A stretch of 64,000 nucleotides of DNA from Laetmonice hystrix (taxonomy: Eukaryota): assembly GCA_965235115.1 (NCBI GenBank), contig OZ249440.1:3224001-3288000 (forward strand), in the 5' to 3' direction. Below the pieces are notes generated by a model, which was not told the origin of the DNA, did not search any database, and saw nothing but the letters and a program-made list of their open reading frames with translations. Numbering within the stretch: the stretch's first letter is position 1; each line of letters starts with the position of its first letter. Shown here in pieces: positions 8,985 through 42,636 of this stretch. Position numbers and translations under genes: made by a program.

Positions 8985-9620
8985 CCAGTCCCCCAGGACA
9001 CAGGGTGGTGCCCTACATTCGACCCATGTCGAGGAGGGAACCGTTCCGACCGTCTACATGCCCGAACCAGTCCCCCAGGACACAGGGAGGTGTCCTACAT
9101 TCGACCCATGTCGAGGAGTGAACCGTTCCGACAGTATGACCGAACCAGTCCCCCAGGACACAGGGCGGTGTCCTACATTCGACCCATGTCGAGGAGGGAA
9201 CCGTTCCGACAGTATGACCGAACCAGTCCCCCAGGACACAGGGAGGTGTCCTACATTTGACCCATGTCGAGGAGGGAACCGTTCCGACCGTATGACCGAA
9301 CCAGTCCCCCAGGACACAGGGAGGTGTCCTACATTCGACCCATGTCGAGGAGGGAGCTGTTCCGACCGTCTACATGCCCGAACCAGTCCCCCAGGACACA
9401 GGGTGGTGTCCTACATTCGACCCATGTCGAGGAGGGAGCCGTTCCGACAGTATGACCGAACCAGTCTCCCAGGACACAGGGAGGTGCCCTACATTCGACC
9501 CATGTCGAGGAGGGAGCTGTTCCGACCGTCTACATGCCCGAACCAGTCCCCCAGGACACAGGGAGGTGTCCTACATTCGACCCATGTCGAGGAGGAAGCC
9601 GTTCCGTCCGTATGACCGAG
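8985..9620. repeat. 78/82-bp minisatellite, 8 copies, overlapping the kinase last exon
   Basis: Units start CCAGTCCCCCAGGACACAGGG, in two length variants. Confidence 0.93.
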
Positions 9621-12700: not shown

Positions 12701-15700
12701 ACTCTTTAGGGGGGGGAGGGGGGTCTGGAAGGAAGTACTCTCTGTACGCTCGTGAAAATGATGAAAATGATGGACGGCCCCTAAGTTAGCCTATGTCTTA
12801 ATGTGTTATTGTAAAAAATATTCTGTAGGCCTGGATGCACGCATAACGTNNNNNNNNNNNNNNNNNNNNNNNNNNNNNNNNNNNNNNNNNNNNNNNNNNN
12901 NNNNNNNNNNNNNNNNNNNNNNNNNNNNNNNNNNNNNNNNNNNNNNNNNNNNNNNNNNNNNNNNNNNNNNNNNNNNNNNNNNNNNNNNNNNNNNNNNNNN
13001 NNNNNNNNNNNNNNNNNNNNNNNNNNNNNNNNNNNNNNNNNNNNNNNNNNNNNNNNNNNNNNNNNNNNNNNNNNNCCAGATAACACATTCCGTCCGATAC
13101 TTGCAGTCCAAAGTTGATCAACTCCCCGACCGTCAGCAGCTGGAGGTCAAACAAAGGTCAATAACAGGTTAAATAGAGGTCAACCTTACCTTGATATCGG
13201 GGGATCATTGGGATCGTTACTTAGGCTAAAACAATTCATTACAGTGGTGGATGTTTGTTTTTAAATATAAAATGGTTCAAACTCAACATAATTGAAAACG
13301 TTGAACGCTCTCATGACGTCAGTCAATGACGTCAGTCAATGACGTCAGTGCTGTAGGTAGTTTGAGAAGGACTCGGTAGGGGGCGCTTACGTTGTCCTCG
13401 TTAGAGATGAAAGTTTTCATATCTCCGTTCTCCATGTATGGCAGTAGGACGTAGACCCGGTTGTTCTCGATGACGACCCCCAGTAGATGAAGGACGTGTA
13501 TGTGTTTGAAACCTTTCATGATGGTTGCCTCCTCCAGAAATACCCCAACATCCCTCGGTGTCACGTGGTACTCTGTACAGATACAATCAACCGGTTAGTA
13601 CACGTGATTGGCGAGAACCAGTTAGTACACGCGAGAACCAGTTAGTACACGCGAGAACCAGTTAGTACACGCGAGAACCAGTTTCATATCCTCTTTGTGC
13701 CATTCCACATGAAAGCTAGGATACCTGTTGAGTCTCATAGAAACTAGGTATACCAAACGGCCATGGGTCATTGTCGGTTCGTAACACCGTTCTCACATCC
13801 TTGTAAGGAAATAATAGAAATCTTCGGGGAGATGGGGAATGTATGCAAGCTTAGGAGTGAAATGTGCAGCGTAGGAGAAAAATATAGTGTCAGAGTAAAA
13901 TGACCCCAGACGCCATAAGTCTCTGGCAGTGGAAGCCATGATTCCTTGACAATGGAAGCCATGAATCCCTGACATTGGAAGCCATGAGTCCCTGACAATG
14001 GAAGCCATGGATTCCTGACACTGGAAGCCATTAGTCTCTGACAAAGGAAGCCATGAGTCCCTGACAATGGAAGCCATGGATTCCTGACACTGGAAGCCAT
14101 TAGTCTCTGACAAAGGAAGCCATGAGTCCCTGACAATGGAGACCATGATCCCCTGACAGTGGAAGCCATGATTCTCTGACAATGGAAGCCATGATTCCCT
14201 GACAATGGAAGCCATAAGTCCCTGACAATGGAAGCCATGGATCCCTGACACTGGAAGCCATGATTCCTTGACAATTGAAGCCATGATTCTCTGACACTGG
14301 AAGCCATGATCCCCTGACAGTGGAAGCCATGAGTCCCTGACAATGGAAGCCATGATTCCCTGACAATGGAAGCTATGAGTCCCTGACAATGGAAGCCATG
14401 ATTCCCTGACAGTGGAAGCCATGATTTCCTGACAATGGAAGCCATGAGTCTCTGACAGTGGAAGCCACGAATCCCTGACAGTGGAAGCCATGATTTCCTG
14501 ACAATGGAAGCCATGAGTCTCTGACAGTGGAAGCCATGAGTCCCTGACAATGGAAGCCATGACTGTTATCGGGCTTGGTTTACACACAACCTGTCAATTT
14601 ACCTCGTAACGTTTTGATGGCGACTGGGATATGTTCCGAGTAGAGGTCGTCTGTAAGTCGCCCTAGGTAAACCCGTGCAAAGTGACCTGGGAATAAGACG
14701 AGCAGGTTGTTAGATAGTTTCACAGGAAGATAGGATTGACATTAGATTAAAACATCTACACTCTACACTTGATATCCCGGGAGATCTCAACGTCCCCACT
14801 CGGATGTCATCAGTTATCAATACATTGTCGTTAGATTAAACCATCTACACTCTACACTTGATATCCCGGGAGATCTCAAGGGAAACGATTGTCGTTAGAT
14901 TAAAACATCTACACTCTACACTTGATATCCCGGGAGATCTCAAGGGAAACGTCCCCACTGTCCTCAGTTATCAATACATTGCCATTAGATTAAACCATCT
15001 ACACTCTACACTTGATATCCCGGGAGATCTCAAGGGAAACGATTGTCGTTAGATTAAAACATCTACACTCTACACTTGATATCCCGGGAGATCTCAAGGG
15101 AAACGGCCCCACTGTCCACAGTTATCTATACATTGTCGTTAGATTAAAACATCTACACTCTACACTTGATATCCCGGGAGATCTCAAGGGAAACGGCCCC
15201 ACTCGGGTGTCCACATACAGTTATCAATACATTGTCGTTCTCCCTTTGTATCCCCTTTGTCTTGTCGTGCATGTGGCCTTCTTTTTGTACCGTGTACAAA
15301 GAGACGTGGGCCCGTTGGGAGTATATTAAAGACCCTCTTTGTGAATGGCCCGCGACTGGGGAGCGGGTAGAGAGGGCCATCCGGCCGACAAGTCTCACCT
15401 TGTCCGATCAGCTTGCCAATCTCTATTCTCTTGTAGTCAATTAGACACTCCTGGACGGTGGTACGGAGGGCTGGGGGAAGGAGGGTGAGTACCTCCATGG
15501 TGGGGTTCACGTACGATGTCTGAGACCCTGGAGGAGGAGGAAGTCACAGTAATAAACATACAGACATACAAGGTCATACAAGGTCATAAGGACAAGGACA
15601 ACCTGTATGGTTTATTTCACCAGGACATAGTTATAGCCAGAGCACTCAAGATTCATTCCGCTGCGACCGCTTACGGCACATGTACTTTCCGTCCTCGCCT

Positions 15701-18700
15701 CTCCCAAAACGATACGCCTTTCTCTTTCTTTCTTCATGCTGGTTCAGTAACCCAAGGAGTCGAGTCACTCACAATGTTGCATTTCTGTTTCTCCCTGGTT
15801 TTGTATTCTGGGTATGTGGGATAAATAACTGTACGACAAATGACCTGGAATAGTATTGTTTCACGCCATAAAAGAAATATCAAATTACATTTCACTTTCT
15901 AGCTCAGGATACAATGCCATCAAGAAATGTCATAATTAACTGAAGTTTCGATAAATAGGTTTCCCGGTTCTATTCAATCCAACCCACACGATATCACTTT
16001 ACACGAGTCGGCTACGGTTACCAAGGAGGAGCACTCAGTTCTAAATGCTCGTTTCCAATCAATGGTATACATTTTGTACCTGCGCCCGTTTCCTTCTAAA
16101 GAACCAGCTGGCCATCTATTAGACGTGACAGACAAAAGGGACGGAATGACGAACGGAATGACGAGATGCTAGTAGTTGTGGGAGTGGTACAGGAGGAGAA
16201 CGTGGCGACCATTGTCACCACATACACCGACTACATTTTTTAAACAGAAAATTGTGACGGCAAAACGGAAGTACTGAGAAACACACAACTATGGTTGATG
16301 GAAAGATTCGCGGTAATACATCTTTTTTTATTTAAACCTCTCGATGAACACTCCGTGCTTTATGTGATTTAAGGTGCTATAGTCGCGTTTAATTCCGTAT
16401 TATGGTGACGTCTACCGCCTATATTCCGGCCAGAGCACATCATTTTACTTTCCGCAAGTAGTTTTTGATTGAGTAAAATCTAGGTTAATGAAGTAGGAAA
16501 CCTTTGCTCTCGCTCTAAGACACTTTAAAAAGATATAAACGAAGAAAGCTTTGGTCTGTCTTAATGGTTCATAAAATAGCGAGGACGCAAGCGCAAGGAT
16601 TTCAGTGCATGTAGTTGGGAGTAAAAAACGTTAATGAGAACGCACTTGTACGGCGTAACTCCATCTCTCATAAAATAATCCCCACCTACAGCAGACCTGG
16701 CGGCCTCCTGTGTGGGGTCTATCATGTACTCCCTCACTTTCAACATCAGAACAACCATTACTGGGTGAATGTACGTCCAGTTGCGATCCTCGAGGTGTCA
16801 TGGTAGCGGCTTGATCTCGCTCGCAGCGACATCTAGCGCTCACACCCTGAATCACGTGACTTGGTATTTACAGCGCCCCCTGGTGTGTTGTACACGTACC
16901 GTTATAAGCCGAGATGTAGGCGTTGTTTCCGGTTTTGGCTGACATCTCGAGGTGAGGATGTTTCTCGGCGTTCTTTTGTTTCGATCGTCTACAGCAGCAC
17001 ACGATGATGATAATAATGAGGAGCACTACGGCAGCCAGGCCTCCCATAATGCCGTACCGGAAGGGCATGTTTTCCCAGAAGTTATGTTCGTAATCGACCC
17101 AGCCAACGTGCTGCTTGATGTTACCCACGTATACCTAAACAAAGAACATCTAATTAGTGGCAATATTGAATTGTCTGGTATAAGATCTAGATTATGGCCC
17201 GGTACCGTGTAGAGTTGCGTATCGAGCCAGACCCTAAAATTTTTGATCATGGTACCGGTATAAATAAATGCCTGAATGAGTGAAACGCGGGAGGTCTTAT
17301 GACGTGATGACGTACAGTGACATGCGGGATACCATCCACGGGACCGTGTGTAGGGTCGGCGTCAGGTTGCCGGGCTGGAGGCCTACAGACCAGCTGATTG
17401 GTCGCCAGGTCGAGGTCCTTGCACTCTGACTGACCAATCGTAACCCTGTAATCATCGACACCACAGCCATAGTCCATCCGGGAACCCTACGAGAGAGCGT
17501 TGGATGTTTAGGTCCACAGAAAACTACACAAATTGAGGCACATGCATCTTACTGTACACTGACAAATCTTAGATCTAAGTATGAGAATTGCAGTCTATGA
17601 ATATTGATGTAGGCTATTAGATTAACCTTTAGTTTTAGTATCAGATTAAATTTGGCATACAGGTTAGCCCTATCTAATCTATCAATCATGCGGCCTATTG
17701 CTTGGCAAAAGACAAACATTTCATTGAGAAAGGAGTCTGTGCATGTGGCGCCACCTGGCGTTTATTGTCAACATTAAGATGTTGGAGTGATTATGGCAAG
17801 AATTACCTTAATAGTAATTAACTTGTTCTGGTAGGGCCAATACGGTTTGTAGGTACTGATGTGACCGTCCTCCTCAAATCTATCAATACTGGGGTCCAAG
17901 TACACCCTGAGTACAGAGTACTGTGGCATGACATTGCTTAGGTTCCGGTATCTTGTCACGCCATCTAGTAGGAATCCCAGGAAAAACTGTAACGTGTCCC
18001 GATTGAGTGGTTTGGCATGGGACGCTCGCTTGACACGTGATCTGTGCTCCTCTCTCGTCAGTGACGTCAACGGAAACTGTGCTTCGTCGTCGTTCTCTGT
18101 GGTGCTATCGACGTCACGGCGTTTCCGGATGCGTTCCTTAGGAACGTCTTTAGGGAGTTGTATATTGGGAGTCGGACAGTGCATCATTCCGGGCATCTGG
18201 ACGCTACATACCTATAGAGACAACAAACCAGCAACTTGGCAATAACTTTCAAATCTTAACTACTTCACGATATCGAGATATGTTGGAGTCACAAATCGCA
18301 TATGTAGTATAAGACATTACAAGGTAAACTGGTCCACGTTAGCCCCTAAACCTGATTCAAGGCTGGATGGGAGGGGGGGGCCTACTCCTGTAGGCTATCC
18401 ACTTCAGCTGAGAACAAAGACCTTGGTTGCTAGGGCCGCTTTTACTAAAGGTCCTTATTTAAAGACGTCGCTAATTTAACATAGAAGTGAATGGGTTGCT
18501 AGGTCGAAAATAACTACCTAGCAACCATTCACTTCTATGTTAAATTAGCGACGTCCTTAAATAAGGACCTTTAGTAAAACCGGCCCCAGACCATTAAGAA
18601 CGCTACAGGAGGATGGGATTTAAAGGTCGAACTGACCCTGTGTGGACAATTACCCTACTCTATCTCAAAAGAGAACGGTTGGAGAAGGGAAACGAAACGG

Positions 18701-21700
18701 TTACTCACCGACGGGAAAACTTTGCTGAAATCTGGGGCCGCCATGGTTACTTCCATCACTGGCCGGTGGACGGAGGTCAGGTGACTTCCTGACACCGTCA
18801 GAATGAGGCCGCCCCTGCAATCACACCACCTTGTGGTAATTAAGCGAACTAAAACCAAACACAAGCGTTCTACAGATTGGTAGACGACATCGACACTCAA
18901 AACTCGACCGGATTTTACATGACATGATAAATGCCGGGGAATTCTTGTAGAACAATAAACGAGAATAAGATGTTGATGTACATCGGAGGCATGTCCCACC
19001 TTTTTAACATGACGGTGAGGATGACCATGAATTCATGTAAGTCGATGTGCATCATGGTGACAATATCATTCAGTCATGATGACAATATTATTCAGTCATG
19101 ATCAAGTACTCAACTACCCCCCCCCCCCCCGAGTCTGAAATAATTTCTTCAATTTAGCAGAATAATTACTTCAGTTTCAAATAGATTCTTGAAATTTCTT
19201 ATGCATGTGGTTTGAACTCGTACTGGTAAATCTCGACCCGCCCAGGCACAGACCAACCAGGCGACCACAGGAACGTGTTTTTGACAGAGCCCAGTTCCAA
19301 ACAGGCCCTTCAATCCAAATATAACCCACCGCCGTTACACTGTTTTTGAAAAGTATATTTATAACATCAAAGAAGTTCTATAATCTCATCCTAAGGCGAG
19401 ATGATACTGTTTTTGATCTAAAACGTATTTTCAGTTAGGACCACGTTACGACAACGGAAACATGTCAAACAGCGTACATTGTGTCGTTGTACGATTCAAT
19501 ATTTGCTCAGCTAATGTCAACATCCTCTCTAACCTAAAAACAAACATGGACCGTTGGTTTGTTCAAATACAATGAAATTTGATAGATAAAGATTTTAGAC
19601 GTCCGTACACATCGGAACATTTCCGGAAACCGCTAGAAAATGGACTTCGGGTACATTAAGTCTATACTTCAGTCGGATAATTTTGTTCTTATGGAAAATG
19701 GCTTTAAATGTACGGACAAACAGATCTATAAATAAAACCAAAAAATACACATTCAAAAAATCCCACCAAGGTGTTAAATCCCTCCACTATATAAGCCCAG
19801 TTCCCACGCTTGTACCGAGTACCAGCTCTACCACCGGTCACCCGTCAACGTAAGTCACCCGGACAATCTGTTACAGAATCAGTTTGTCCAGAGCTGCGCA
19901 GCCTCAATTTTTGTTAACGTAAATTCAATTATAGAGGGACTTTGTCTGTCTGAACTTCGTGTTTTGGAAGCAAACATTTCCAGCTCCTACAGTGAGCGCA
20001 TATAAAGTACAAACAACGTTAGTCGGATAGAGATTGGCAGCTCACGGATCTAAGGGGAGCTTCCCCAAGTTTACGGGGGGGGGGGGGGGGGGTTAGTACG
20101 ATTCGTCATATCCTTTAAACCCTTATTCGTGTATTCGCATACTGAGCACTCCTTATATTAGTGAGCCCTACTCCCTCACAACCCCTTAGAAAGTATCCCG
20201 TCAGCAGTCCTTAGATTACCCCCTCCCCCTGCCGACCACTCCGAATACAATTCATAAATGATGTAGTTTGTAGGTCTAGTTATCCACATAGTTTAACAAA
20301 ATGAGATCATTGAGAAGGCAGATATTCGAGGTACCTGAGTCACAAGGACCACTCTGCACACAGACTACGCCTCAAGGTGTCCAGGTTTAGTTGTTTAGAT
20401 TGTGCGTGTGTCTGACAAGCTTGGTTAGCGGGGCCCGTGGGGGTTGGCCATCGACCGGACACAGTGGTTGTGAATAAAGCCATGACTTAGGGCGCCATAA
20501 TTTACATATATAAAGCCATGACTTAAGGCGCCATGATTTCCATATAAAACGGTCGTAGATCTTACATCAGGAACGTCTCCAAGGGCTCGACATGGCTGAT
20601 CTTCGGGTCGCTGAGATACGTAAACTCGTCTGGCATTGTGACGTCAGTGACGTTATTGACGTGGAGAGTGACGGGAAGCGGCGTTCCTTTGACGGAGGTG
20701 GCGGCGTGCAGCGGCAGTGACCCCGTAATACATGTCAAGGTCGTGTGGTTACTGAAAGGTCACCATCACACCGTTATGAGTAACAAGAGAGATGTAAGAC
20801 CATTCAGATGTCTGAAATCTCCCAATCTTAGAGACCATTCAGATGTCTGAAATCTCCCAATCTTAGAGACCATTCAGATGTCTGAAATCTCACAAGCTTA
20901 GAGACCATTCAGATGTCTGAAATCTCACAATCTTTGAGACCATTCAGATGTCTGAAATCTCACAATCTTAGAGACCATTCAGATATCTGAAATCTCACAA
21001 TCTTAGAGACCATTCAGATGTCTGAAATCTCACAATCTTAGAGACCATTCAGATATCTGAAATCTCACAATCTTAGAGACCATTCAGATGTCTGAAATCT
21101 CACAATCCTAGACAGGAGAGACGTCAAACCTGCCTACGGTCCTGTCATCGACTATTCATAGAATGCTGTATTCCTTTTTTAAAATTCTGAATTGTCTTTT
21201 TCCTTTTACCTTTTATACCGAATACCAGAATAGGACCGTTCTGTCTTTTCAAGTAAATAACAGTTATGTTTTGACAAAACATCACATTTTACCTATTTTT
21301 TTTTCACATAAACAAACGATACACATCTGTAAATCCGCACAAAATTCCAATATGAAAGAAAGCTTGGAGATGACCTACTTTTCTGTCGGGACAATGCTGC
21401 AGGGCACTTGGCCCACCTTCATATTGGCGTTAGAGATGTTTCCAAGGAAACCACCTCGTATTTCAAGCACCGTGCCGCCTGACTCGGGCCCAAAGGTCGG
21501 GACAACACTCCGACCGTACGGAGACTGTCAACGATCATCGGACAAAACAAATAATTATTTATCACTCATCTTCATGTCTTCCTCCATGATCTCATAGCAG
21601 GTTTGGTAAAGCTTTTCGTTTCGAGGTAATTACTTAAAATATCATGCCGTATTGTCATTAAAAATTCCTCAAAATGTTCTGTAAATGCTCAGTAAATGTT

Positions 21701-24700
21701 ACAGGATTATAGGATTTTAAAAAACATGGAGATGATATGTCTTCATAAAAAATTAAAGACTGACGATTTCCAAAACAAAATTGATTCATTTACATTTGGT
21801 ATCATCATGAAAATCTTGTTGAAGCACTGGATCAAATGGAAGTTATTAAAGGTATCCTTACACATTTGTAGTTGGTGACCGCTGGGTCCCCGGCGCCCGG
21901 GATACAGTGACATCTACCGGTGTTTGCGTCACATGAAGCGCCCCCTATCGTACCCGGAGGGTAACACCCACACGACCTGCACCCGGCCTCGAGCCTCGAT
22001 TCCATACCAAACATGCCCTTGGCACACTGCCCGCACCGCCGACCCTGTACCGCCGACTTACACCGACATTGCCCCGACGTGACGTCACAACTCTCCGAAC
22101 CATTCACCGTACCCATGACGTAACAAGCGCACGGTAGGCAGCCACCTACCGTCGACCTCCCGAACCCGTACGTGGCGTCTTTACATTGATCACAGCGTCT
22201 GCCACTGGTGTTGATCTTACATGGACACTGTCCGCCTAGATCTCGGCAATCTCCGCCGGCCTTCGGGTCCGACCCAGACTCCACACAGTCACAGAGGTGG
22301 ACGCAGCCGTTTTTGGACATGTCCGATTCGTTGTTTGCGTAGTATCCCGGTTTGCATTTGTCACAGCGCCGACCAATGACGTTAGTTCTACACGTACACT
22401 GACCTGTCAACTGATTGCAGGTCCGTGTTTCTGAACCCAGCGGGTCACACTCACACGGTGAACATCCTCGTGGGTTCGACTTAGTCAAGTTATAGAACCC
22501 ATCAATACATTGGCCACATGCCTGACCTGTGAACGAAAATAAATTTTCCTGAACTTTTTTTGTTTATTTGTTTTAAAGATATTATAACGTGCATAAACAC
22601 GAGAGAAAGACAGACCAAACTCGACCGATTTAGAGATACGAGTGAAATATAGTGCAATCTAAATTGAAGAGTCAAGTATGCAAAAAAATATTGGCCGCTC
22701 TGGCCTGCACTTACCTGTAACTGTTGTTTTACATTGACACTGTCCGTTATTCTGATCACAACTGCTTCCCATAGAACCTGTCGGGTCACACGCGCACGAG
22801 CTACAGCCCAGCGGATTGGTTGATTCTAATTTATAATAACCCTTCTTGCATACGTCACACTCCATGCCCGTGACGTGGTCTTTGCAGGCGCACTGCGCCG
22901 TGATGACGTCACAAACGTTATTGCCGTTCTTGGTTCCGTTAATGTAGCACGTGCACGGCCGGCAGCCATCTTTGTCAGACGCTCTCAATCCAAAGTAGCC
23001 CGGTCTACAGGTGTCGCACCGACGCCATCCGACCTTGGGCTTACACTTACACTGTCCGCCGAACTGTGGATCAAAAACAGTAGCCGATTTTACAAGCTGG
23101 CTCACAGTTCTGTCAGCCCAACACATCGGCTGTAGCTGGTTTTAGCACAACATGGCACCAAGTATCAATTATTTACTGTGATCTGGCCCATAATAGTCAG
23201 ACCTACATCTTCATAAGTGTATATTTCAGTTAATAGATTAGTGTTGAATTAGTTGAATTTGGCGTTTCGAAGCCAACTGTTTTTGGTTTTTAATCGTTTG
23301 ATGAGGAAAATGAGGGGTTAAAGGGGAAACTATAAAATAAAAAAATAAAAAATTAAAAATAAAATAAAAATAAAACTATAAAAAAAATATAAAATTTCAT
23401 CATTCTCCGCACTGATCTACCCTGAGATTCCCTCTACCCCCTACCTGACTTCTAACTACTTACAGTTTCACAGTTGTGGTCTCCGTCCACGGTACCGGCC
23501 GGCTCACAATCACAAGGTCGGCAGACGTCAATGGCGTACTCATCTTTGGTCGTATCCTTGTACGTACCCATCACACACTCATCACACTGGCGCCCTCTAG
23601 TGTACGTCTCGTTCGCGCATGCGCAGACGTAGGGCGTCACTGACGTATCGCAGGATCTCGCGTGCCCGTGACAGTCACACCTAGTTACGTAATATTAGTT
23701 AGACTGTGGGATTTGAATACGTGGGGACATATTTTATGAATACTCTATGTAAATACTGAGACAATACTAAAGAGTCACCAGGCCTGAGTTAGTTTGACGT
23801 TGTTTGTTGTTTATGATGAGTCAGCAGACCGCCTCCATCCATGCCTACCTGGCGTCCACCGTGACCTCAGCCAGGGCGTGATACATGTGGTTCTCATTCT
23901 GGACAAAGGGATGTCCGCGCATGGTGAGACGTACAGCGTCCGCCTGGAGAAACTGACGTAACGAGTAGGACGTCGTGTTAGTCGACGTCCCAGGACGTCC
24001 TGCCAGCAGGTCCAGGACTATCTCACCGTTAGAATACGGCGGCGTCCCTTCTTTTCTAAAATTTAACAAAAAAATAAATCTGGTTAAAAAGAGTGATGTT
24101 GTCAGGTCTAACTCCGTCATCACGTAGACTATGCTCACGTGTTTAAAGGTGCTATTCGTCTCGCACAGAATGACATTTCTCCTATCATACATTGTGCACA
24201 TAGTACTAGAAAAAATTCCTACCGATACCATTGACCTGATAAACCTTCTATTAGTTTGTGTGCAGCATTTGAAACCTATCTCGGTGCGCACCGAGATAGA
24301 GCCATTTCCTATGGTGGGGCGTGTCAGGGTCTCCACAGGCCTTCTGAGAGAGCCCCATTTGTGCCGTTATCCATGAACAATTTTGATTTCCTTTGTTGTG
24401 AATCTATTTCCATGATAGGTGGGATCACCTAAACGTCAACAAAATTAAAAATAAAAAAATTAAATTTTTGTTCACGAATAGCACCTTTAAAATATCATTT
24501 GCATAAAGTACGTTCTTCCGTTATCATTTAGTGTTGTGTGTAGGAATTACTTGTAGGTATTTCCACATCCTTTGTTCCGTATAGTCAAGAGTTACTCACG
24601 GGACCATCGACCGACAGTTGACACTGTCCTCAGCTACAAGCTCGCCATTCGCCGGAAGGCTGAAAATACTCTGACAGTCATGCGCATACAGTTGCCATGG

Positions 24701-27700: not shown

Positions 27701-30700
27701 AAACTGATAGTAGGTATACCTGTTTGACAAACATCATTCACTCTGATAAACTGATAGTAGGTATACCTGTTTGACAAACATTATTCACTCTGATAAACTG
27801 ATAGTAGGTATACCTGTTTGACAAACATCATTCACTCTGATAAACTGATAGTAGGTATACCTGTTTGACAAACTTGCAATGTATATCCTGAAGTCCTGCA
27901 TGTCACCCACAAAATGGTCGTCAGCTGAAAACAAAGACCGACAATATAATATCATTATCGTATATACTGAACCCATAATATATGTATCGATGTGACATAT
28001 TACTCAACCCGACTTTACTGGTCTTGGTTATAGTACAAGGTAATCCTGGCCGATTTTCTTACTTCGAAAACTGATGAGTGACTGATAGATAACTAAGTAT
28101 AAAAAGTTACTTCACGACAGTACAGAATATGAGGCTATCAAGATATCAATGTTCATTGAACCACCCCCCCCCCCGCCAAAATAAAACATGGGAAAGTTAT
28201 CGTTACCATGGGGAAGTTATCGTTACCATGGGGAAGTTATCGTTACCATGGGGAAGTTATCGTTACCATGGGAAGTCATCGTTACCATGGAAAGTTATCG
28301 TTACCATGGGGAAGCTATCGTTACCATGAGGAAGCTATCGTTACCATGGGGAAGTTATCGTTACCATGGGGAAGTTATCATTACCATGGGGAATGTTACC
28401 ATAGGGAAGTTATCGTTACCATGGGGAAGTTATCGTTACCATGGGGAAGTTATCGTTACCATGGGGAAGTTATCGTTACCATGGGGAATGTTACCTTGGG
28501 AAAGTTATCGTTCCCATGGGGAAGTTATCGTTACCATGGGGAAGTTATCGTTACATTGGGGAATGTTACAATGGGGAAGTTATCGTTTCCATGGGGAAGT
28601 TATCGTTACCATGGGGAAGTTATCGTTACCATGGGGAAGTTATCGTTACCATGGGGAGTGTTACCTTGGGAAAGTTATCGTTCCCATGGGGAAGTTATCG
28701 TTACCATGGGGAAGTTATCGTTACCATGGGGAAGTTATCGTTACCATGGGGAAGTTATCGTTACCATGGGGAAGTTATCGTTACCATGGGGAAGTTATCG
28801 GTACCATGGGGAAGTTATCGGTACCATGGGGAAGTTATCGTTACCATGAGGAAGTTATCATTACCATGGGGAATGTTACCTTGGGGAAGTTATCGTTACC
28901 ATGGGGAAGTTATCGTTACCATGAGGAAGCTATCGTTACCATGGGGAAGTTATCGTTACCATGGGGAAGTTATCATTACCATGGGGAATGTTACCATAGG
29001 GAAGTTATCGTTACCATGGGAAAGTTATCGTTACCATGGGGAAGTTATCATTACCATGGGGAATGTTACCATAGGGAAGTTTTCGTTACCATGGGAAAGT
29101 TATCGTTACCATGGGGAGTGCTACCATGAGGAAGTTATCGTTACCATGGGAAAGTTATCGGTACCATGGGGAAGTTGTCGTTACCATGGGGAAGTTATCG
29201 TTACCATGAGGAAGTTGTCGTTACCATGGGGAAGTTATCGTTACCATGGGGAGTGCTACCATGGGGAAGTTATCGTTAAAGGTGGTTACTTACTAGAGAA
29301 GGACTGTCCGACTATGTACTTGCTTGCACTGCGCGGCGGACCCAGGTCGACATTATAGGCGGTGGGTGACACGTAACTACCGTTCAGAGACACTGACACC
29401 GTCTTGTCCAACACCTGCCGGATACAATCAACATTGCCGTTAGAGACGGTTAGAGACTACAGAGAAAATCACTCGAGTGAGGCAGACAAAGTTTTCTGAA
29501 GCCTATAGAAATCATAATCATGGATATTATCAATTTGTAAAAAGTTTTGGTGACAACTGAAAAGGCGTGGATTTTACAGTCGAGAAAAATACGTTGTGTA
29601 GGAAGTCTAATGGCGTAAAAAACTTGAAATTGAATCAATTCGGATAACACATAAAAATAACCCCTTTTTTATTTGTGAATTTAACGTTACCATGACAATA
29701 TGTGAGCCTAAGAGGGAGCTTGGTCTGGTTTGAAATCAAGTTAAATGAGCTTTGCCTGTATCCATGGCTTTGATTGGCTAATTGTTTTAACGTTCAGCCA
29801 ATCAGAGAAGGTTACTAAGATGACCTTACCCTGACCGCTAAGTGAGTCCACTGATTGGCCGGTAGAACCCAGAGACCACGTGATGTTTTCACGGTGTTAT
29901 GTGACATAATGAAAAGTTGAAGATTTGATAAAAGTCCCAGTCGTAAAACATCGGTACCCGCCTCGGTAACAATGACAAATAGGGTGCTGCAAGAACAAAG
30001 GGTCACAAATAATGTAATGCAATGGACCGGAACGGTCTTGCAAAAAGTGCTGTAAGATAGAGAAACGGACCACAATGGATGCTGCAATAGATCGGAACGG
30101 GTCATAAATAAAGTGCTGCAACAAAGTGGAACAAAGTGCTCTGGTGGCGCGAGAAACTGGAGTATCCAGTAAGAATCAGCAACATGAAGCAAGTGACAAA
30201 CTTTCTCTTGCAAGTCATAAATACAGAGAGGAAAGTTTCTGCATGTGACCCCCCCCCCCCCCCCCCGAAGTCAGACCCCTAGGTCTTCCGCTCCCTTGCA
30301 AAACGCTGCACGTAGAACATTTAAAAAAAGGATTTAAAACTGTTGTTGAAAAACTTCCACGCCTCCCGTAAAGAGCGAATCATCTTGCCCGAACCCACTA
30401 TGCGACACCAGTCGCAAGCCTTGCGACAACAGTCGCAAGCCTTGCGACACCAATCAAGACTCGCGACCAAGGCTTGTGATAATATCAAACATGTTTGATA
30501 TTTCCCCGTCTTGTCGCAAGCCTTGCGACAGGCTCGTCGCAAGCCTTGCGACGGCCTGTCGCAAGGCATGAATCGCATAGTATTGGGCTACCGACTATAC
30601 GAGTGAATATACTCGCCATCATGGCCATGCGCCGCCGACTACGGGTGTGCAAACAACCAAACAAAGCCAACTCACCACCAGAAAGGTTTACTTTTCTGTC

Positions 30701-36700: not shown

Positions 36701-39700
36701 GTAGGTCTACCACCCTCGGAGTGTTGGCAGTATGGTAGGCCAGTCGTATGTATAATAACGATATCACCGACCTAATTATAGACATACAGGTCTAAGTGAG
36801 TAGGTCTACCACCCTCGGAGTGCAGGCAGTATGGTAGGCCAGTCGTATGTATAATAACGATATCACCGACCTAATTATAGACATACAGGTCTAAGTGAGT
36901 AGGTCTACCACCCTCGGAGTGTTGGCAGTATGGAAGGCCAGTCGTATGTATAATAACGATATCACCGACCTAATTATAGACATACAGGTCTAAGTGAGTA
37001 GGTCTACCACCCTCGGAATGTTGGCAGTATGGTAGGCCAGTCGTATGTATAATAACGATATCACCGACCTAATTATAGACATACAGGTCTAAGTGAGTAG
37101 GTCTACCGCCCTCGGAGTACTGGCAGTATGGTAGGCCAGTTGTATGTATAATAACGATATCACCGACCTAATTATAGACATACAGGTCTAAGTGAGTAGG
37201 TCTACCACCCTCAGAGTGTTGGCAGTATGGTAGGCCAGTCGTATGTATAATAACGATATCACCGACCTAATTATAGACATACAGGTCTAAGTGAGTAGGT
37301 CTACCACCCTCAGAGTGTTGGCAGTATGGTAGGCCAGTTGTATGTATAATAACGATATCAGTCACATGATTCCTGATTGTCGGATCCCAGGGGACCTAAT
37401 TACATACATACAGGTGAGTAGGCCGGCAGGCTATCGTGATTACAATGTGCGCCCTAGGAGTGCTTGCAGCATGGCAGGCCAGTGGCGACTCCTATCGTAT
37501 AATAAGATACAAAATATGAGTAACATGAGGAGCTGACGACTCTTGACCGAATCTTCACCACCACTCCTTGAGTGTTGTTAATATGTAGACCTATACACAA
37601 CGTTCAGAAGTACCCAGTATCATCTGCTCTGGTTGTAGTGGGTGTGGTTGTGGTGGTGGTGGTGGTGGTGGTTCTGGGTGTGGTTGTGGTGGTGGTGGTG
37701 GTTCAGGGTGTGGTGGGGGTGGAGTCATGCACATCTTCAGGGAATGATCCTCATGAGACGTTGTTTCCCTCATAAATTTTGGGGCGTTCATTGTTGCTAA
37801 CATTTCACAGCGGTGCCCTCCCCCATCTCGAGCTGGAGTGTGGTAAAAACAAAGCTCCAGTTCACCGGGCACCTCACGCCCGTTCCCGTTCCACCGTGTT
37901 TCCACGTCCCATGGGATTTGTTCCTGGCAGACTGCCGATCACATGTCATGAAACGACTTTCCCACAGTCAAACTATACTCATGGCTTTGCTTTTTGTAAA
38001 ACAATCCTCCAAGTCTATTTCTACTCCTCAGTAGCTCGTATCTTCCTGGTGTCTATTGCTATCCTAACAGTTTCTTTCTCACAACTTTGGAGTTCCGAAG
38101 ATTTTTTGTACGTGATCTACGAGTAGTGGTGACTTAATTGGGGTGTTATGCCCTGGTGGCAGTAGTTATAAGTCATAGTGGTACATAGGATGTTTGGGGT
38201 GTCATGCCATGTGGGGTGTTATGCCATGGTGGCAGTAGTTATAAGTCATAGTGGTACATAGGATGTTTGGGGTGTCATGCCATGTGGGGTGTTATGCCAT
38301 GGTGGCAGTAGTTATAAGTCATAGTGGTACATAGGATGTTTGGGGTGTCATGCCATGTGGGGTGTTATGCCATGGTGGCAGTAGTTATAAGTCATAGTGG
38401 TACATATGATGTTTGGGGTGTCATGCCATGGTGGCAGTAGTTATAAGTCATAGTGGTACATAGGATGTTTGGGGTGTCATGCCATGGTGGCAGTAGTTAT
38501 AAGTCATAGTGGTACATAGGATGTTTGGGGTGTCATGCCATGGTGGCAGTAGTTATAAGTCATAGTGGTACATAGGATGTTTGGGGTGTTATGCCATGGT
38601 GGCAGTAGTTATAAGTCATGGTGGTACATAGGATGTTTGGGGTGTCATGCCATGTGGGGTGTTATGCCATGGTGGCAGTAGTTATAAGTCATGGTGGTAC
38701 ATAGGATGTTTGGGGTGTCATGCCATGGTGGCAGTAGTTATAAGTCATAGTGGTACATAGGATGTTTGGGGTGTCATGCCATGGTGGCAGTAGTTATATA
38801 AGTCATAGTGGTACATAGGATGTTTGGGGTGTCATGCCATGGTGGCAGTAGTTATAAGTCATAGTGGTACATAGGATGTTTGGGGTGTCATGCCATGGTG
38901 GCAGTAGTTATAAGTCATAGTGGTACATAGGATGTTTGGGGTGTCATGCCATGGTGGCAGTAGTTATAAGTCATAGTGGTACATAGGATGTTTGGGGTGT
39001 CATGCCATGGTGGCAGTAGTTATAAGTTATAGTGGTACATAGGATGTTTGGGGTGTCATGCCATGGTGGCAGTAGTTATAAGTCATAGTGGTACATAGGA
39101 TGTTTGGGGTGTCATGCCATGGTGGCAGTAGTTATAAGTCATAGTGGTACATAGGATGTTTGGGGTGTCATGCCATGGTGGCAGTAGTTATAAGTCATAG
39201 TGGTACATAGGATGTTTGGGGTGTCATGCCATGGTGGCAGTAGTTATAAGTTATAGTGGTACATAGGATGTTTGGGGTGTCATGCCCTGGTGGCAGTAGT
39301 TATATAAGTCATAGTGGTACATAGGATGTTTGGGTTGGCATGCCCTGGTGGCAGTAGTTATATAAGTCATAGTGGTACATAGGATGTTTGGGGTGTCATG
39401 CCATGGTGGCAGTAGTTATAAGTCATAGTGGTACATAGGATGTTTGGGGCGTTATGCCATGGTGGCAGTAGTAATAAGTCATAGTGGTACATAGGATGTT
39501 TGGGGTGTCATGCCATGGTGGCAGTAGTTATAAGTCATAGTGGTACATAGGATGTTTGGGGTGTCATGCCATGGTGGCAGTAGTTATAAGTCATATAGTG
39601 GTACATAGGATGTTTGGGGTGTCATGCCATGGTGGCAGTATGTAGTTATAAGTCATAGTGGTACATAGGATGTTTGGGGTGTCATGCCATGGTGGCAGTA

Positions 39701-42636
39701 TGTAGTTATAAGTCATAGTGGTACATAGGATGTTTGGGGTGTCATGCCATGGTGGCAGTAGTTATAAGTCATACTGGTACATAGGATGTTTGGGGTGTTA
39801 TGCCATGGTGGCAGTAGTTATAAGTCATAGTGGTACATAGGATGTTTGGGGTGTCATGCCATGGTGGCAGTAGTTATAAGTCATAGTGGTACATAGGATG
39901 TTTGGGGTGTTATGCCATGGTGGCAGTAGTTATAAGTCATAGTGGTACATAGGATGTTTGGGGTGTCATGCCATGGTGGCAGTATGTAGTTATAAGTCAT
40001 AGTGGTACATAGGATGTTTGGGGTGTCATGCCATGGTGGCAGTAGTTATAAGTCATACTGGTACATAGGATGTTTGGGGTGTCATGCCATGGTGGCAGTA
40101 GTTATAAGTCATAGTGGTACATAGGATGTTTGGGGTGTCATGCCATGGTGGCAGTAGTTATAAGTCATATAGTGGTACATAGGATGTTTGGGGTGTCATG
40201 CCATGGTGGCAGTAGTTATAAGTCATAGTGGTACATAGGATGTTTGGGGTGTCATGCCATGTGGGGTGTTATGCCATGGTGGCAGTAGTTATAAGTCATA
40301 GTGGTACATAGGATGTTTGGGGTGTCATGCCATGGTGGCAGTAGTTATAAGTCATAGTGGTACATAGGATGTTTGGGGTGTCATGCCAAGGTGGCAGTAG
40401 TTATAAGTCATAGTGGTACATAGGATGTTTGGGGTGTCATGCCATGGTGGCAGTAGTTATAAGTCATAGTGGTACATAGGATGTTTGGGGTGTCATGCCC
40501 TGGTGGCAGTAGTTATAAGTCATAGTGGTACATAGGATGTTTGGGGTGTCATGCCATGGTGGCAGTAGTTATAAGTCATAGTGGTACATAGGATGTTAAG
40601 GGGTGTCATGCCATGCATGGTGGCAGTAGTTATAAGTTATAGTGGTACATAGGATGTTTGGGGTGTCATGCCAAGGTGGCAGTATGTAGTTATAAGTCAT
40701 AGTGGTACATAGGATGTTTGGGGTGTCATGCCATGGTGGCAGTAGTTATAAGTCATAGTGGTACATAGGATGTTTGGGGTGTCATGCCATGGTGGCAGTA
40801 GTTATATAAGTCATAGTGGTACATAGGATGTTTGGGGTATCATGCCATGGTGGCAGTAGTTATAAGTCATAGTGGTACATAGGATGTTTGGGGTGTCATG
40901 CCATGGTGGCAGTAGTTATAAGTCATAGTGGTACATAGGATGCATGGGGTGTCATGCCATGGTGGCAGTAGTTATAAGTCATAGTGGTACATAGGATGTT
41001 TGGGGTGTCATGCCATGGTGGCAGTAGTTATAAGTCATAGTGGTACATAGGATGTTTGGGGTGTCATGCCATGGTGGCAGTAGTTATAAGTCATAGTGGT
41101 ACATAGGATGCATGGGGTGTCATGCCATGGTGGCAGTAGTTATAAGTCATAGTGGTACATAGGATGTTTGGGGTGTCATGCCAAGGTGGCAGTAGTTATA
41201 AGTCATAGTGGTACATAGGATGTTTGGGGTGTCATGCCATGGTGGCAGTAGTTATAAGTCATAGTGGTACATAGGATGTTTGGGGTGTCATGCCATGGTG
41301 GCAGTAGTTATATAAGTCATAGTGTTACATAGGATGTTTGGGGTGTCATGCCATGGTGGCAGTAGTTATAAGTCATAGTGGTACATAGGATGTTTGGGGT
41401 GTCATGCCATGGTGGCAGTAGTTTCCGCGTCAATAATCTGAATGATAACCTGTGCTTACCTTTCTCTATCGGTGGGGACGGGCCGGATCCAAGTGGCCAG
41501 CGTTATCGACCGCACTGATTGGAGGAAGAGGGCCGCCATCCACTCTGTGGCCAGATTTAAGAAACAAGTACTTCCGGTACCACCCGCGGCCTTGAAATTG
41601 ACGCGGAACAACTGTACCTGAGCGGTTGGCGGGGCAGGGGCAAGCTTGTCAAATTGCTTGGAGACACAATCTCCCCAGCCGTCAGTTACTCTGTTAAAAA
41701 GGAACTCATGATGAGGTAATGCCTTATTTGGGCATGTTGCGTCACAGTCGTCCTCCCAGCATGCACTGACAGTGGCCGGGTCGATGCTGCTCCGGCAAAA
41801 TGCCTCCTTTCCTGACAAACCGCACACAGCTGTCGATGGCGTAACAGAAATTGGGCTCAATTTGGCAGCGTTGAAAGTTGGTGGGACCAGAGCCTGGCAC
41901 CGGAGTCCAGGCATCAATATTCCGAAAAAGAAAATCACAAACACATATTTAGATAAATCCCGAATACAGGTGCAATGCATCCCTGCCCACCGGAAAAGGT
42001 CCTTTCGCTGTTTCGGGCGAGATTTGGTAGTATAGCGAGAATTAGTCTGTTTCTGATACATGTTCGCACCGTTCTGTCTTGAACTTCCATGCGTCCATGC
42101 CTTTTCTATGCTGAGGTAGTTACATACACTGTTAGATGCATTTCTATTCTTATCTACGAGAGAATCAATAGAATAATGGTGTACTCGGCCAATGCTCGTA
42201 TCATCGCTCATCTCTGGTCCACCTACTTTTTGATACCCGTGTGGACGACTGAGTTTTGGATCTTTAATTGCGACAGTTTGCTTGCATGGACTGTGGTCTC
42301 TGTCCTGTGGATCATGCCCTTGAGAACACCCATTCTGTGGTGTGTTGTCTCCTGTTATGTGTGACACAGACAGACAAATGTACGCTTTGTGTGGGTTCCC
42401 GGTAGAGGGAGTCGGAGGAGAACTGTGCTGGACGTCCAGGGTCGCGGAATGTCGCCTCGTCCCTGGTACGTCCATGACGTCATGACGTCGTCTGCTGGCG
42501 TCTCTCTCTGCGTCCACGCGATGACGGCAGTGCGACGGTCCAACATGTCCGTCCTGATCGGCCGCCTGGCTCGTCATCCTTGTAGATCTCCTCAACCTTA
42601 CTACCACCTCCACTCGGTCATCGGGTTCTCGTGGAC
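9571..42636 (-). CDS. Multi-exon chimeric receptor tyrosine kinase: usherin-like LamG/LamNT/laminin-EGF ectodomain + 3 IPT + TM + MET/RON-like kinase (~1670 aa from ATG 41980; ~1870 aa from ATG 42577)
   Basis: 23 exons chained manually with GT-AG sites and matching phases. The only break is the exon truncated by the N gap. Individual exons are listed below. Confidence 0.88.
10494..10630 (-). CDS. RTK exon: kinase subdomains IX-X
   Basis: [21 protein letters not shown] is near-identical to [24 protein letters not shown]. Phase 0 to 2. Confidence 0.94.
11150..11312 (-). CDS. RTK exon: kinase DFG and activation loop
   Basis: [19 protein letters not shown]...[11 protein letters not shown]...TTKCDV. 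Phase 2 to 0. Read by hand. Confidence 0.93.
11445..12781. mobile_element. PIF/Harbinger-type non-autonomous element (MITE-like, 1337 bp)
   Basis: About 39-bp TIR GGGGCCGTCCATCATTTTCATCATTTTCACGAGCGTACA at both ends, flanked on both sides by TAA (11442-11444, 12782-12784). Internal ~200-bp segments are repeated. No transposase seen. Confidence 0.8.
12850..13075. other. Assembly gap (226 N)
   Basis: Run of n characters. Confidence 1.
13076..13139 (-). CDS. RTK exon: kinase subdomain VIa, truncated by assembly gap
   Basis: [21 protein letters not shown], then Ns. The HRDLAARN motif is expected next and is not visible. Confidence 0.88.
13391..13572 (-). CDS. RTK exon: kinase subdomains III-V
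   Basis: [22 protein letters not shown]...[11 protein letters not shown] (MET [22 protein letters not shown]...VVLPYMKHGDL). Phase 1 to 0. Confidence 0.92.
13611..13683. repeat. 20-bp repeat x~4
   Basis: GCGAGAACCAGTTAGTACAC. Confidence 0.85.
13925..14562. repeat. 23-bp minisatellite, ~28 copies
   Basis: Unit GACAATGGAAGCCATGAGTCCCT with variants. Confidence 0.93.
14603..14686 (-). CDS. RTK exon: kinase subdomains I-II
   Basis: [10 protein letters not shown]...VAIKTLR, with the catalytic Lys present. Phase 1 to 1. Read by hand. Confidence 0.88.
14741..15237. repeat. Higher-order repeat: constant ~57-bp block with alternating short and long linkers
   Basis: TTAGATTAAAACATCTACACTCTACACTTGATATCCCGGGAGATCTCAAGGGAAACG recurs with related linkers. 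Confidence 0.88.
15399..15527 (-). CDS. RTK exon: juxtamembrane to kinase Gly loop
   Basis: SQTSYVNP...[21 protein letters not shown]. Acceptor ttcctcctcctccag, donor gtgaga, phase 1 to 1. Confidence 0.88.
16900..17134 (-). CDS. RTK exon: transmembrane helix and juxtamembrane start
   Basis: VYVGNI...[28 protein letters not shown] is a hydrophobic run followed by a basic stop-transfer. Donor gtacgt, phase 0 to 1. Confidence 0.88.
17316..17486 (-). CDS. RTK exon: IPT3
   Basis: GSRMDYGC...[10 protein letters not shown]...NQLVCRPP. Phase 0 to 0. Confidence 0.87.
17807..18211 (-). CDS. RTK exon: IPT2 with polybasic insert, start of IPT3
   Basis: [15 protein letters not shown]...RIRKRR...RVKR...[10 protein letters not shown]...VYLDPSI...LITIK, similar to the plexin/MET membrane-proximal region. 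Phase 0 to 0. Confidence 0.87.
18433..18587. mobile_element. Palindromic hairpin MITE-like element
   Basis: About 70-bp near-perfect inverted arms with a ~11-nt loop and GGGCCG/CGGCCC termini. No clean TSD. Confidence 0.6.
18709..18814 (-). CDS. RTK exon: IPT2
   Basis: [20 protein letters not shown] (cf. MET [20 protein letters not shown]). Acceptor ttgcag, donor gtgagt, phase 2 to 0. Confidence 0.87.
20566..20751 (-). CDS. RTK exon: end of IPT1 and start of IPT2
   Basis: TLTCITG...[19 protein letters not shown] (cf. MET FSYREDPIVYEIHPTKSFI). Phase 2 to 2. Confidence 0.87.
20793..21108. repeat. 35-bp minisatellite x9
   Basis: GAGACCATTCAGATGTCTGAAATCTCACAATCTTA, with internal palindrome TTCAGA-TCTGAA. 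Confidence 0.93.
21379..21524 (-). CDS. RTK exon: IPT/TIG domain 1, first half
   Basis: [28 protein letters not shown]...VGQVPCSI is the IPT signature (P..GP..GGT.L.I.G..LG). Acceptor gttgacag, donor gtaggt, phase 0 to 2. Read by hand. Confidence 0.85.
21862..22526 (-). CDS. RTK exon: laminin-EGF repeats 4-7 plus truncated 8th repeat
   Basis: [14 protein letters not shown]...CGCYPPGT...RCHCIPG...TNYKC, then donor gtaagg. Phase 1 to 0. Confidence 0.92.
22715..23063 (-). CDS. RTK exon: laminin-EGF repeats 2-4
   Basis: [19 protein letters not shown]...[10 protein letters not shown]. Phase 0 to 1. Confidence 0.93.
23464..23680 (-). CDS. RTK exon: laminin-EGF repeats 1-2
   Basis: [21 protein letters not shown]...[15 protein letters not shown]. 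Acceptor tag, donor gtaagt, phase 2 to 0. Confidence 0.92.
23849..24055 (-). CDS. RTK exon: laminin N-terminal domain part 3
   Basis: [14 protein letters not shown]...[12 protein letters not shown]...[12 protein letters not shown]. Phase 2 to 2. Confidence 0.9.
24147..24486. mobile_element. TTAA-flanked MITE (Kolobok-like termini)
   Basis: TTAA|AGGTGCTATTCGT ... ACGAATAGCACCT|TTAA, with a central 24-bp palindrome ctatctcggtgcgcaccgagatag. Confidence 0.72.
24600..24787 (-). CDS. RTK exon: laminin N-terminal domain part 2
   Basis: [15 protein letters not shown]...[12 protein letters not shown]...DSVNC. Acceptor tttcag, donor gtgagt, phase 0 to 2. Confidence 0.9.
26210..26300. repeat. 20-bp repeat x4
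   Basis: GGAATAGGACAGGTAAGTGG; one inverted copy near 25958-25980. Confidence 0.85.
26336..26615 (-). CDS. RTK exon: laminin N-terminal domain part 1
   Basis: EIQEVYLG...[10 protein letters not shown]...YCVANDG...[23 protein letters not shown] matches usherin SHCRCPGSHP...RLNPEAHPLSFVNDNDVGTSWVS. Phase 2 to 0. Confidence 0.9.
26642..26885. repeat. 16-bp minisatellite x~15
   Basis: GGCCCTGATCCACTAA. Confidence 0.93.
27266..27872. repeat. 47-bp minisatellite x~13 containing an exon end and splice donor
   Basis: Minus-strand unit TTTGTCAAACAG|GTATACCTACTATCAGTTTATCAGAGTGAATGATG. Confidence 0.93.
27861..27924 (-). CDS. RTK exon: end of LamG-like domain (64 nt)
   Basis: [20 protein letters not shown] matches usherin EQFVGRMQDFRLYQVALTN. 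Acceptor tgttttcag, donor gtatac, phase 1 to 2. Confidence 0.88.
28188..29278. repeat. 20-bp minisatellite (~1.1 kb) with shorter variants
   Basis: ATGGGGAAGTTATCGTTACC. Confidence 0.95.
29294..29414 (-). CDS. RTK exon: LamG-like jellyroll part 2
   Basis: [15 protein letters not shown]...YIVGQSFS (usherin VHQTKISFFING...VQIGQSLN). Acceptor cag, donor gtaagt, phase 0 to 1. Not in the ORF track; read by hand. Confidence 0.8.
29830..29986 (-). CDS. RTK exon: LamG-like jellyroll part 1
   Basis: STLFVIV...[12 protein letters not shown] (usherin KKWIHLSVQ). Acceptor ttcttgcag, donor gtaagg, phase 2 to 0. Confidence 0.8.
30944..31515. repeat. ~30-bp minisatellite, block 1
   Basis: TGGACTGGGGCCTAGGTTCACGGCTGGGCCT variants. 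Confidence 0.92.
31517..31721 (+). mobile_element. tRNA-derived SINE-like element, copy 1
   Basis: A-box-like TGGCCTAGTGG and B-box GGTTCGATTCC (31620-31630). Near-identical copies at 31850-32055 and, reversed, at 54535-54686. Confidence 0.7.
31850..32055 (+). mobile_element. tRNA-derived SINE-like element, copy 2
   Basis: Direct near-identical duplicate of 31517-31721. Confidence 0.7.
32270..32522. repeat. Same ~30-bp minisatellite, block 2
   Basis: Same unit as 30944-31515, resuming after the SINE pair. Confidence 0.9.
33003..33236. repeat. 38-bp minisatellite x6
   Basis: ATGTCTGGCCCAGGCAATGTAAGGAAGTGTGATGCACA. Confidence 0.93.
33721..34230. repeat. 41/42-bp minisatellite x~12, two interleaved variants
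   Basis: GGGGAGGGTCGGTGAGAGAAATGGTACTGGAA followed by GGTACCACT or CGGGAGCAGT. Confidence 0.93.
36220..37360. repeat. 99-bp tandem repeat x~11
   Basis: GTGAGTAGGTC recurs at 36301, 36400 and onward. Confidence 0.93.
37630..37720. repeat. (GTG)n-rich microsatellite
   Basis: Seen directly. Confidence 0.85.
38130..41422. repeat. 56-bp satellite, ~3.3 kb
   Basis: GTGGCAGTAGTTATAAGTCATAGTGGTACATAGGATGTTTGGGGTGTCATGCCATG. Confidence 0.96.
41460..42636 (-). CDS. RTK exon: open N-terminal extension, hydrophobic signal/anchor ([18 protein letters not shown]) and usherin-like N-terminus
   Basis: [35 protein letters not shown]...CDATCP...[10 protein letters not shown] resembles usherin LFPRLENVGAFKKVSIVPTQAVCGLPDRSTFCHSS...SFTLAVWLKP. 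Acceptor tttttttctccctcaacag at 42637, donor gtaagc (phase 2). In-frame ATGs include 42577 and 41980; the true start is uncertain. Confidence 0.85.

Follow-up and report, generated by a model that had tools for sequence, protein, structure and literature searches.

Many lineage-specific heads are known among the receptor tyrosine kinases (RTKs) of invertebrates. DDR1/2 are RTKs with a matrix-binding ectodomain, which are activated by matrix and not by a soluble growth factor. In netrins and laminins, modules composed of an LN domain and laminin-EGF (LE) repeats serve receptor binding or network assembly, and there are reports that the head of usherin, the matrix protein of Usher syndrome, binds other matrix proteins.

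Among the receptors closest to the gene described here, Met and a plexin-headed Met-LP have been found in Capitella and Aplysia (Junqueira Alves et al. 2019, PMC6374515). The same survey searched by the Sema domain, makes no mention of laminin domains, and proposes that plexins acquired kinase domains more than once (PMC6374515). Being based on Sema, it could not have detected the present gene, which has no Sema domain. No description of such an architecture came up in full-text searches that paired usherin, LamNT or laminin-EGF with a tyrosine kinase, and a search on RTK domain architectures in Capitella added nothing on it. A first-pass annotation of this DNA knew of no described receptor of this architecture, and the literature searches agree with it; it may well be that the architecture is already listed in automatic annotations of other genomes.

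The DNA analysed is a stretch of 64,000 nucleotides from the assembly of Laetmonice hystrix (GCA_965235115.1, contig OZ249440.1, positions 3,224,001 to 3,288,000), hereafter the window. We consider it about 80% probable that the window holds an intact gene for a single-pass RTK of an old, conserved family, in which an usherin-type head is placed on a MET/plexin-type IPT-TM-kinase half.

Gene structure

The gene lies on the minus strand, to which all exon coordinates below refer, and was modelled as 24 exons from a start ATG at 41980 to a stop codon at 9573-9571, with splice-site placement guided by homology to Capitella. Stop-free minus-strand pieces with recognisable coding sequence were found from 41980 to 9571, and every junction among the 24 exons is of the GT..AG type and keeps the reading phase. 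The sole uncertain junction of the model is that between exons 17 and 18, where the candidates for the donor and the acceptor score poorly; this region is a single exon in Capitella. Spliced together, exons 1-21 give 4525 nt, or 1508 stop-free codons, and exons 22-24 add 164 amino acids up to the stop.

The predicted protein of ~1690 residues would be a single-pass RTK, composed of a signal peptide, an usherin-type N-terminus, a LamG-like stretch, an LN domain, LE repeats, three IPT domains, a TM helix, a juxtamembrane segment and a kinase domain, in that order. The signal peptide, the TM helix and the motifs GxGxxG, VAIKTL, DFG and APE were all found in it. Pfam scans were run on single-exon pieces, and the counts of LE and IPT repeats were taken from the spliced protein.

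An usherin-type head

Exon 1 (41460..41980) contains the ATG, the signal peptide and the usherin-type N-terminal domain, and ends in phase 2 at the donor AAAG|GTAAGC. The LamG-like stretch follows in exons 2-4 (29986-29830, 29414-29294 and 27924-27861), which have canonical splice sites. These three exons gave no Pfam match and their LamG fold is unconfirmed; the stretch is kept among the orthologues (Capitella and the locus L052) and has one weak positional match in the usherin locus L031. The chain of domains read in the first-pass annotation stands in its other members and in their order; on the LamG-like label Pfam is silent.

The LN domain is encoded by exons 5-7 (26615-26336, 24787-24600 and 24055-23849). 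Pfam Laminin_N matched three pieces of the gene, with 5.3e-11 (the best) and 7.5e-4 for exons 5-7, and a Laminin_N scan of the Laetmonice genome likewise matched this locus, at C5:3248590. Exons 5-7 are 41-49% identical to their Capitella counterparts and 44-49% identical to the usherin of the same genome. Exons 8-10 (23680-23464, 23063-22715 and 22526-21862; Pfam EGF_laminin 7e-5, 5e-24 and 5e-38) encode seven complete LE repeats and a truncated eighth, the latter directly before the first IPT domain.

A weak match to positions 2-56 of the Laminin_N profile (E 7e-4) was observed in exon 1 (41680-41860), while exons 6-7 match positions 92-231. An inserted LamG-like stretch may split the LN domain of usherin-type heads.

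The N-terminal exon has a single other match in the genome, at C3:13302772 (36% identity). There, LN and LE exons come after the N-terminus just as they do in the window gene, at 31-49% identity, and the locus (C3:13.30-13.34 Mb) continues with fn3 (3.6e-20), a pair of LamG domains (2.9e-16), many more fn3 domains and CC-rich exons. By this domain content, the C3 gene is usherin proper, and a full usherin is thus present in the genome. The best non-orthologous matches of the large LE exon were ORFs with fn3 domains, LamG pairs and more fn3 domains behind them, which is the usherin pattern. The head had been called usherin-like from the window alone, and these genome-wide comparisons bear this out, since the N-terminal exon matches only the usherin locus elsewhere in the genome and the matches of the LE exon show the usherin pattern.

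A search of a representative library with the N-terminal exon returned exon-sized ORFs only (81-330 aa), two of which (P0004 and P0014) sit on ~1-kb contigs without gene context. In the tree of the N-terminal exon, whose 53 rows are sequence clusters, two clades were resolved with 100/99 support each: an RTK-type clade of 27 clusters, which includes the window gene, Capitella and P0016 of L052, and an usherin-type clade of 26, which includes the C3 usherin. Together with the C3 locus, these two deep clades indicate that the head of the window gene and that of usherin are paralogues, separated by a deep split.

The domain order and the intron layout of the head resemble those of usherin closely enough that the window gene could be read as the lineage's own usherin orthologue, with a kinase added and with no separate paralogue. 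This reading is already refuted by the full usherin at C3, and the two deep clades of the N-terminal exon likewise speak against it; its probability is practically nil.

The LE/IPT junction

Between the last LE exon and the first IPT exon lies an intron of 337 nt (21525..21861, minus strand; GT..AG, phase 0), with the donor TGT|GTAAGG and the acceptor GACAG|TCT. The first-pass annotation had placed the junction 21862/21524 at exactly these letters. The corresponding intron has 53 nt in Capitella (phase 0, GT..AG) and 806 nt in L052, where it is again in phase 0 and stands directly behind a Cys codon. The donor position of the LE exon is common to the window, L049 and P0069.

At this junction it had to be considered whether the architecture is an artefact, either because a MET-like gene that lacks a head lies next to a truncated copy of usherin or because of a misjoin in the assembly at 21.5-21.9 kb. 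None of the RNA runs contains the locus, and NCBI models the Capitella locus as two partial genes, both of which would fit such an artefact. The spacer, on the other hand, is 337 nt in the window and 53 nt in Capitella, with GT..AG borders and phase 0 in both, and is too short to accommodate the terminator of one gene and the promoter and signal peptide of a second. Moreover, the linkage of LE and IPT is common to five independent assemblies.

The three runs in which the locus was found are contigs of one sample, which may itself be the source of the assembly. Short-read unitigs from these runs tile 21043-21663, 21634-21774 and 21745-23297 with overlaps of 30 nt and at depths of ~60, 60 and 33, so that the junction is covered at even depth, and no sign of a genomic misjoin near 21.5-21.9 kb was seen in the unitigs over 21043-23297. 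The unitigs count against a misjoin of long reads, yet they are not independent of the individual, since the sample may be the assembly source. An artefact of either kind is therefore very improbable. On this genomic evidence, the junction reflects neither a misjoin nor two genes, and LE and IPT belong to one gene.

IPT domains and transmembrane segment

Exons 11-15 (21524-21379, 20751-20566, 18814-18709, 18211-17807 and 17486-17316) encode three IPT/TIG domains. The Pfam TIG profile matched three of the exons at 4.5e-4, 0.05 and 1.7e-3, all of them under the cut-off, because introns split each IPT domain. Profile A2, for which the first IPT exons of six genes were combined, was compared with PDB and matched plexin-A1 (8.7e-22), plexin-A4 (4e-17) and the IPT domain of human MET (6e-16), which removes the doubt left by the sub-cut-off TIG scores. 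Three IPT domains of the plexin/MET type thus stand before the TM helix. No Sema match was obtained with Pfam on any exon piece or in a Sema scan of the genome within C5:3.22-3.29 Mb, and a genome scan for PSI gave no match at this locus.

Polybasic motifs occur in a loop of the second IPT domain, namely RKRR and RVKR in the window gene, RRRRKR in Capitella and RGRRRR in a paralogue at C1 (see below). These motifs suggest furin-type processing of the predicted receptor into two chains, as in MET. Exon 16 (16900..17134) encodes the membrane-proximal segment and a single TM helix, followed by the stop-transfer sequence RRSKQK; it gave weak Pfam matches for TM segments and is 56% identical to Capitella.

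Kinase domain

The juxtamembrane segment and the start of the kinase (GKLIGQG) are encoded by exons 17-18 (16685-16630 and 15519-15399), and the N-lobe with the VAIKTL lysine, the hinge and the start of the C-lobe by exons 19-21 (14686-14603, 13572-13391 and 13139-13076). Exons 22-24 (11312-11150, 10630-10494 and 9763-9571) encode DFG, the activation loop, the C-lobe, a short tail and the stop. Pfam PK_Tyr matched three exons, with 2e-10 in the region of exons 19-21 and 7.5e-15 in that of exons 22-24.

When compared with PDB, the Capitella ORF that covers the N-lobe to the catalytic loop matched MET (1e-22) before an insulin-like receptor (7e-20), RON (6e-19) and InsR (2e-17). The C-lobe exon of the window gene also matched MET best (1.5e-14), with RON at 1.3e-11, whereas InsR, IGF1R and MuSK were the best matches of its activation-loop exon (5e-14). 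MET is accordingly the top solved structure for two of the three kinase exons compared. The activation loop has the form YxxxYY. The C-terminal tail of MET bears a docking site of two tyrosines, and this site is absent from the tail of the window gene, which is short and has a single Tyr shared with Capitella (RSYGRNGF versus IAYRGRSF). The claim of a MET kinase therefore needs some qualification: the IPT-TM-kinase half is indeed plexin/MET-like, but the activation-loop exon is nearer to the insulin-receptor type.

An assembly gap (N run, 12850..13075) covers the last part of exon 21 together with the beginning of the intron behind it. From 13139, exon 21 stays in frame until it meets the N run at 13075, and the catalytic loop and the donor fall inside the gap. 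In Capitella, the counterpart of the hidden exon end has FVHRDLACRNCM. Past the point where exon 21 meets the gap, the Capitella exon continues AEKRFVHRDLACRNCM and ends in phase 2; the Capitella kinase carries VAVKTL, HRDLACRN and DFG. The acceptor of exon 22 at 11312 (CCACAG|G GTC GAC) agrees with Capitella in position and in its phase 2, and continuity of the reading across 12850-13075 is consistent with this homology.

Repeats within the gene and integrity of the kinase

A tandem array of eight 78-bp units (8985-9619) starts inside the last exon. Its first unit contains the last ~15 codons with the stop, and in the later units one frame can still be read as ...SSLLDMGRM-stop. Since the tail is homologous to that of Capitella, the 78-bp satellite appears to have grown from the 3' end of the gene.

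Tandem arrays also fill the introns (38139-41423, 36215-37360, 33717-34230, 30943-32535, 28187-29278, 27266-27873 and 13912-14562). The largest of them, in intron 1, has a 56-bp unit, extends over ~3.3 kb and shows a strong GC skew; others consist of 99-bp units (x11.6) and 20-bp units (x57). A very high-copy repeat with a unitig depth of >250,000 was observed at 24122-24515, in the intron that separates exon 6 from exon 7. Each of the three runs has contigs in which 24142 is connected to 24486 through seven other letters, and the insertion hence seems to be missing from the other haplotype.

The gap and the repeats raise the question of whether the family is real but the Laetmonice copy is a pseudogene or a dead kinase. 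The catalytic loop falls in the gap, where a lesion might be hidden, the 3' end lies in a satellite, and the introns are filled with satellites. Against this, 1508 + 164 codons are open, the splice sites are all intact, VAIKTL, DFG, YxxxYY and APE are kept, and the tail remains homologous to the Capitella tail even inside the repeat. The exons are, furthermore, 62-66% identical in a close relative. We regard loss of function as unlikely, and favour an intact receptor gene.

Paralogues of the IPT-TM-kinase half

The four closest matches of the activation-loop exon in the Laetmonice genome, at C13:20.97 Mb, at C1:41.06 Mb and twice on C12, all adjoin IPT exons. The match at C13:20.97 Mb (63% identity) has PSI (1e-6) and TIG (4e-10) upstream and belongs to a PSI-IPT-TM-kinase gene of the MET type (C13:20964000-20975500; L038-L039). 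A Sema exon was not found in the 24 kb upstream of it, neither by the genome-wide Sema scan nor by reading of ORFs. A MET-type gene thus exists in the genome beside the window gene, as a PSI-IPT-kinase gene, but the Sema domain of a complete MET was not detected there. With usherin and the PSI-IPT-kinase gene both present separately, the window gene represents a third, chimeric gene.

The match at C1:41.06 Mb (66% identity) has Ephrin_rec_like repeats and IPT exons upstream. This closest kinase paralogue (C1:41027000-41059000; L041-L044) is composed of many Ephrin_rec_like (GCC2/GCC3) repeats (Pfam to 1.9e-11), IPT, TM and kinase, and we know of no description of an Ephrin_rec_like head on an IPT-TM-kinase cassette. 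Further upstream lies an apparent tandem copy with Ephrin_rec_like, IPT and TM, for which a kinase exon was not seen ahead of the next gene.

For the membrane-proximal IPT exon, the genome contains 15 paralogous matches (C20, C12, C21, C7 and C1). At least five of them precede a tyrosine-kinase exon of the same strand by a few kb, which suggests that putative IPT-bearing receptors form an expanded family. The position of the nearest kinases (63-66%) beside IPT exons fits the inheritance of IPT, TM and kinase as one cassette from a MET/plexin-type ancestor.

The two parts might instead have separate origins, with the IPT domains derived from a plexin and the kinase from a gene of the insulin-receptor/ROS type, in which case "MET-like" would be a misnomer. 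The insulin-receptor affinity of the activation-loop exon is in keeping with this, as are the slightly greater nearness of IPT exon 1 to plexin-A than to MET and the repeated acquisition of kinases proposed for plexins (PMC6374515). The N-lobe and C-lobe exons, however, match MET best with RON close behind, and the nearest kinases in the genome belong to IPT-carrying genes, including the PSI-IPT-kinase gene. Separate origins are thus improbable, and descent as a single cassette is the reading that we retain.

Conservation in other species

In Capitella teleta (KB302615.1; L029:7511-14257), every exon class was found on a single strand and within 6.7 kb, and their order is that of the window gene. 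The tblastn E-values were 1e-16 for the N-terminus, 2e-20 for LN, 2e-54 for LE, 9e-20 for IPT2 and 9e-26 for the kinase. Exons 2, 15 and 17, which are poorly conserved, were the only ones without a tblastn match there. The NCBI annotation of the locus consists of two partial models, CAPTEDRAFT_46637 (LE only) and a 281-aa kinase, which should be merged; the same merging is needed in annelid genomes.

In a close relative (ERZ26222911), one 42.2-kb contig carries the exons for LE (P0069), IPT (P0068) and the kinase, all on the same strand. Exons of this relative are 62-66% identical to those of the window, with 64% for the IPT exon. LN, LE, IPT1 and IPT2 are present in the same order in L049 (ERZ22147071), and the N-terminus, LN, LE and IPT1 in L052 (ERZ26052287). 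Helobdella HELRODRAFT_155780 was rejected as an orthologue, as it adjoins Furin-like and Recep_L exons.

Judged from these sequences, the gene is not peculiar to Laetmonice and belongs to a family present at least in Capitella and in several other assemblies. The great age of the family follows from the Capitella orthologue and from the N-terminal clade of 27 clusters. The chances are about even that it constitutes an ancient RTK family across annelids, perhaps wider in spiralians, in which the usherin head serves as the ligand-sensing ectodomain.

Proposed origin and mode of action

We hypothesize that the 5' half of usherin, comprising the N-terminal domain, the LamG-like stretch, LN and ~8 LE repeats, was duplicated and that the copy became fused, at a phase-0 intron, with the IPT-TM-kinase cassette of a receptor of the MET/plexin type. 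Replacement of a Sema/PSI head by the usherin head, as the first-pass annotation proposed, would be one possible direction of the event. The gene would then be a case of exon shuffling at a conserved phase-0 intron, by which a matrix protein was combined with a signalling cassette.

In the predicted receptor, the usherin-like head would bind a partner in the matrix or on a cell surface, or would associate with itself, and such contact would bring two receptors together. Activation by basement-membrane or LN contacts, which the first-pass annotation proposed, is hypothetical. By analogy with other RTKs, the kinases might then trans-phosphorylate each other on the YxxxYY activation loop, and the signal would leave through the juxtamembrane segment and the tail tyrosines. 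Furin-type cleavage at the polybasic loop of the second IPT domain would give a receptor of two chains, as in MET.

With this gene, the MET/plexin-related RTKs gain a receptor class that is invisible to Sema-based surveys. It also ties the usherin head, the partners and mode of action of which are poorly defined, to the output of a kinase that can be assayed. If the proposed function is true, the usherin head alone is a module that binds a partner or associates with itself and can thereby make receptors dimerise, and kinase activation offers a natural read-out for finding the partners of the usherin ectodomain. If it is true, the Ephrin_rec_like-headed paralogue would further imply that the MET-type IPT-TM-kinase cassette was redeployed under several unrelated heads.

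Comparison with known systems

DDR1/2, whose activation by matrix serves as our working model, are functional analogues only: their discoidin ectodomain is unrelated, we claim no homology, and matrix binding by the window receptor is hypothetical. If its head does bind matrix or a partner of usherin, the receptor would be an RTK activated by matrix or by contact on a principle other than that of the discoidin receptors. With netrins and the short arms of laminins, it shares an LN domain followed by LE repeats. Netrins and laminins are, however, secreted proteins without a TM helix or a kinase, whereas in the window gene LN and LE form the ectodomain of a kinase.

Met-LP differs in its complete plexin ectodomain of Sema, PSI and a series of IPT domains (PMC6374515), as the window gene has neither Sema nor PSI. 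The likeness to MET/RON lies in the IPT domains next to a single TM helix and followed by a tyrosine kinase, in the N-lobe and C-lobe exons that are nearest to human MET, in the twin tyrosines of the activation loop, and in a polybasic furin-type motif in the ectodomain. Unlike in MET/RON, the head is composed of an N-terminal domain, LN and LE in place of Sema and PSI, there are three IPT domains and not four, and the polybasic site is found in an IPT loop and not in Sema. The activation loop (YxxxYY) is also of the insulin-receptor type, and the tail has one conserved Tyr.

To usherin (USH2A), the resemblance is that of the whole head: the N-terminal domain, a stretch with the motif FVGxMQDFRxY, LN and a run of LE follow one another in the same order, and the LN domain is spread over three exons in a similar way. 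The window gene, however, halts after ~8 LE repeats and has neither the fn3 arrays and LamG pair of usherin nor its CC-rich region and PDZ-binding end. From its LE repeats it passes into IPT, TM and kinase, as a gene separate from the usherin at C3.
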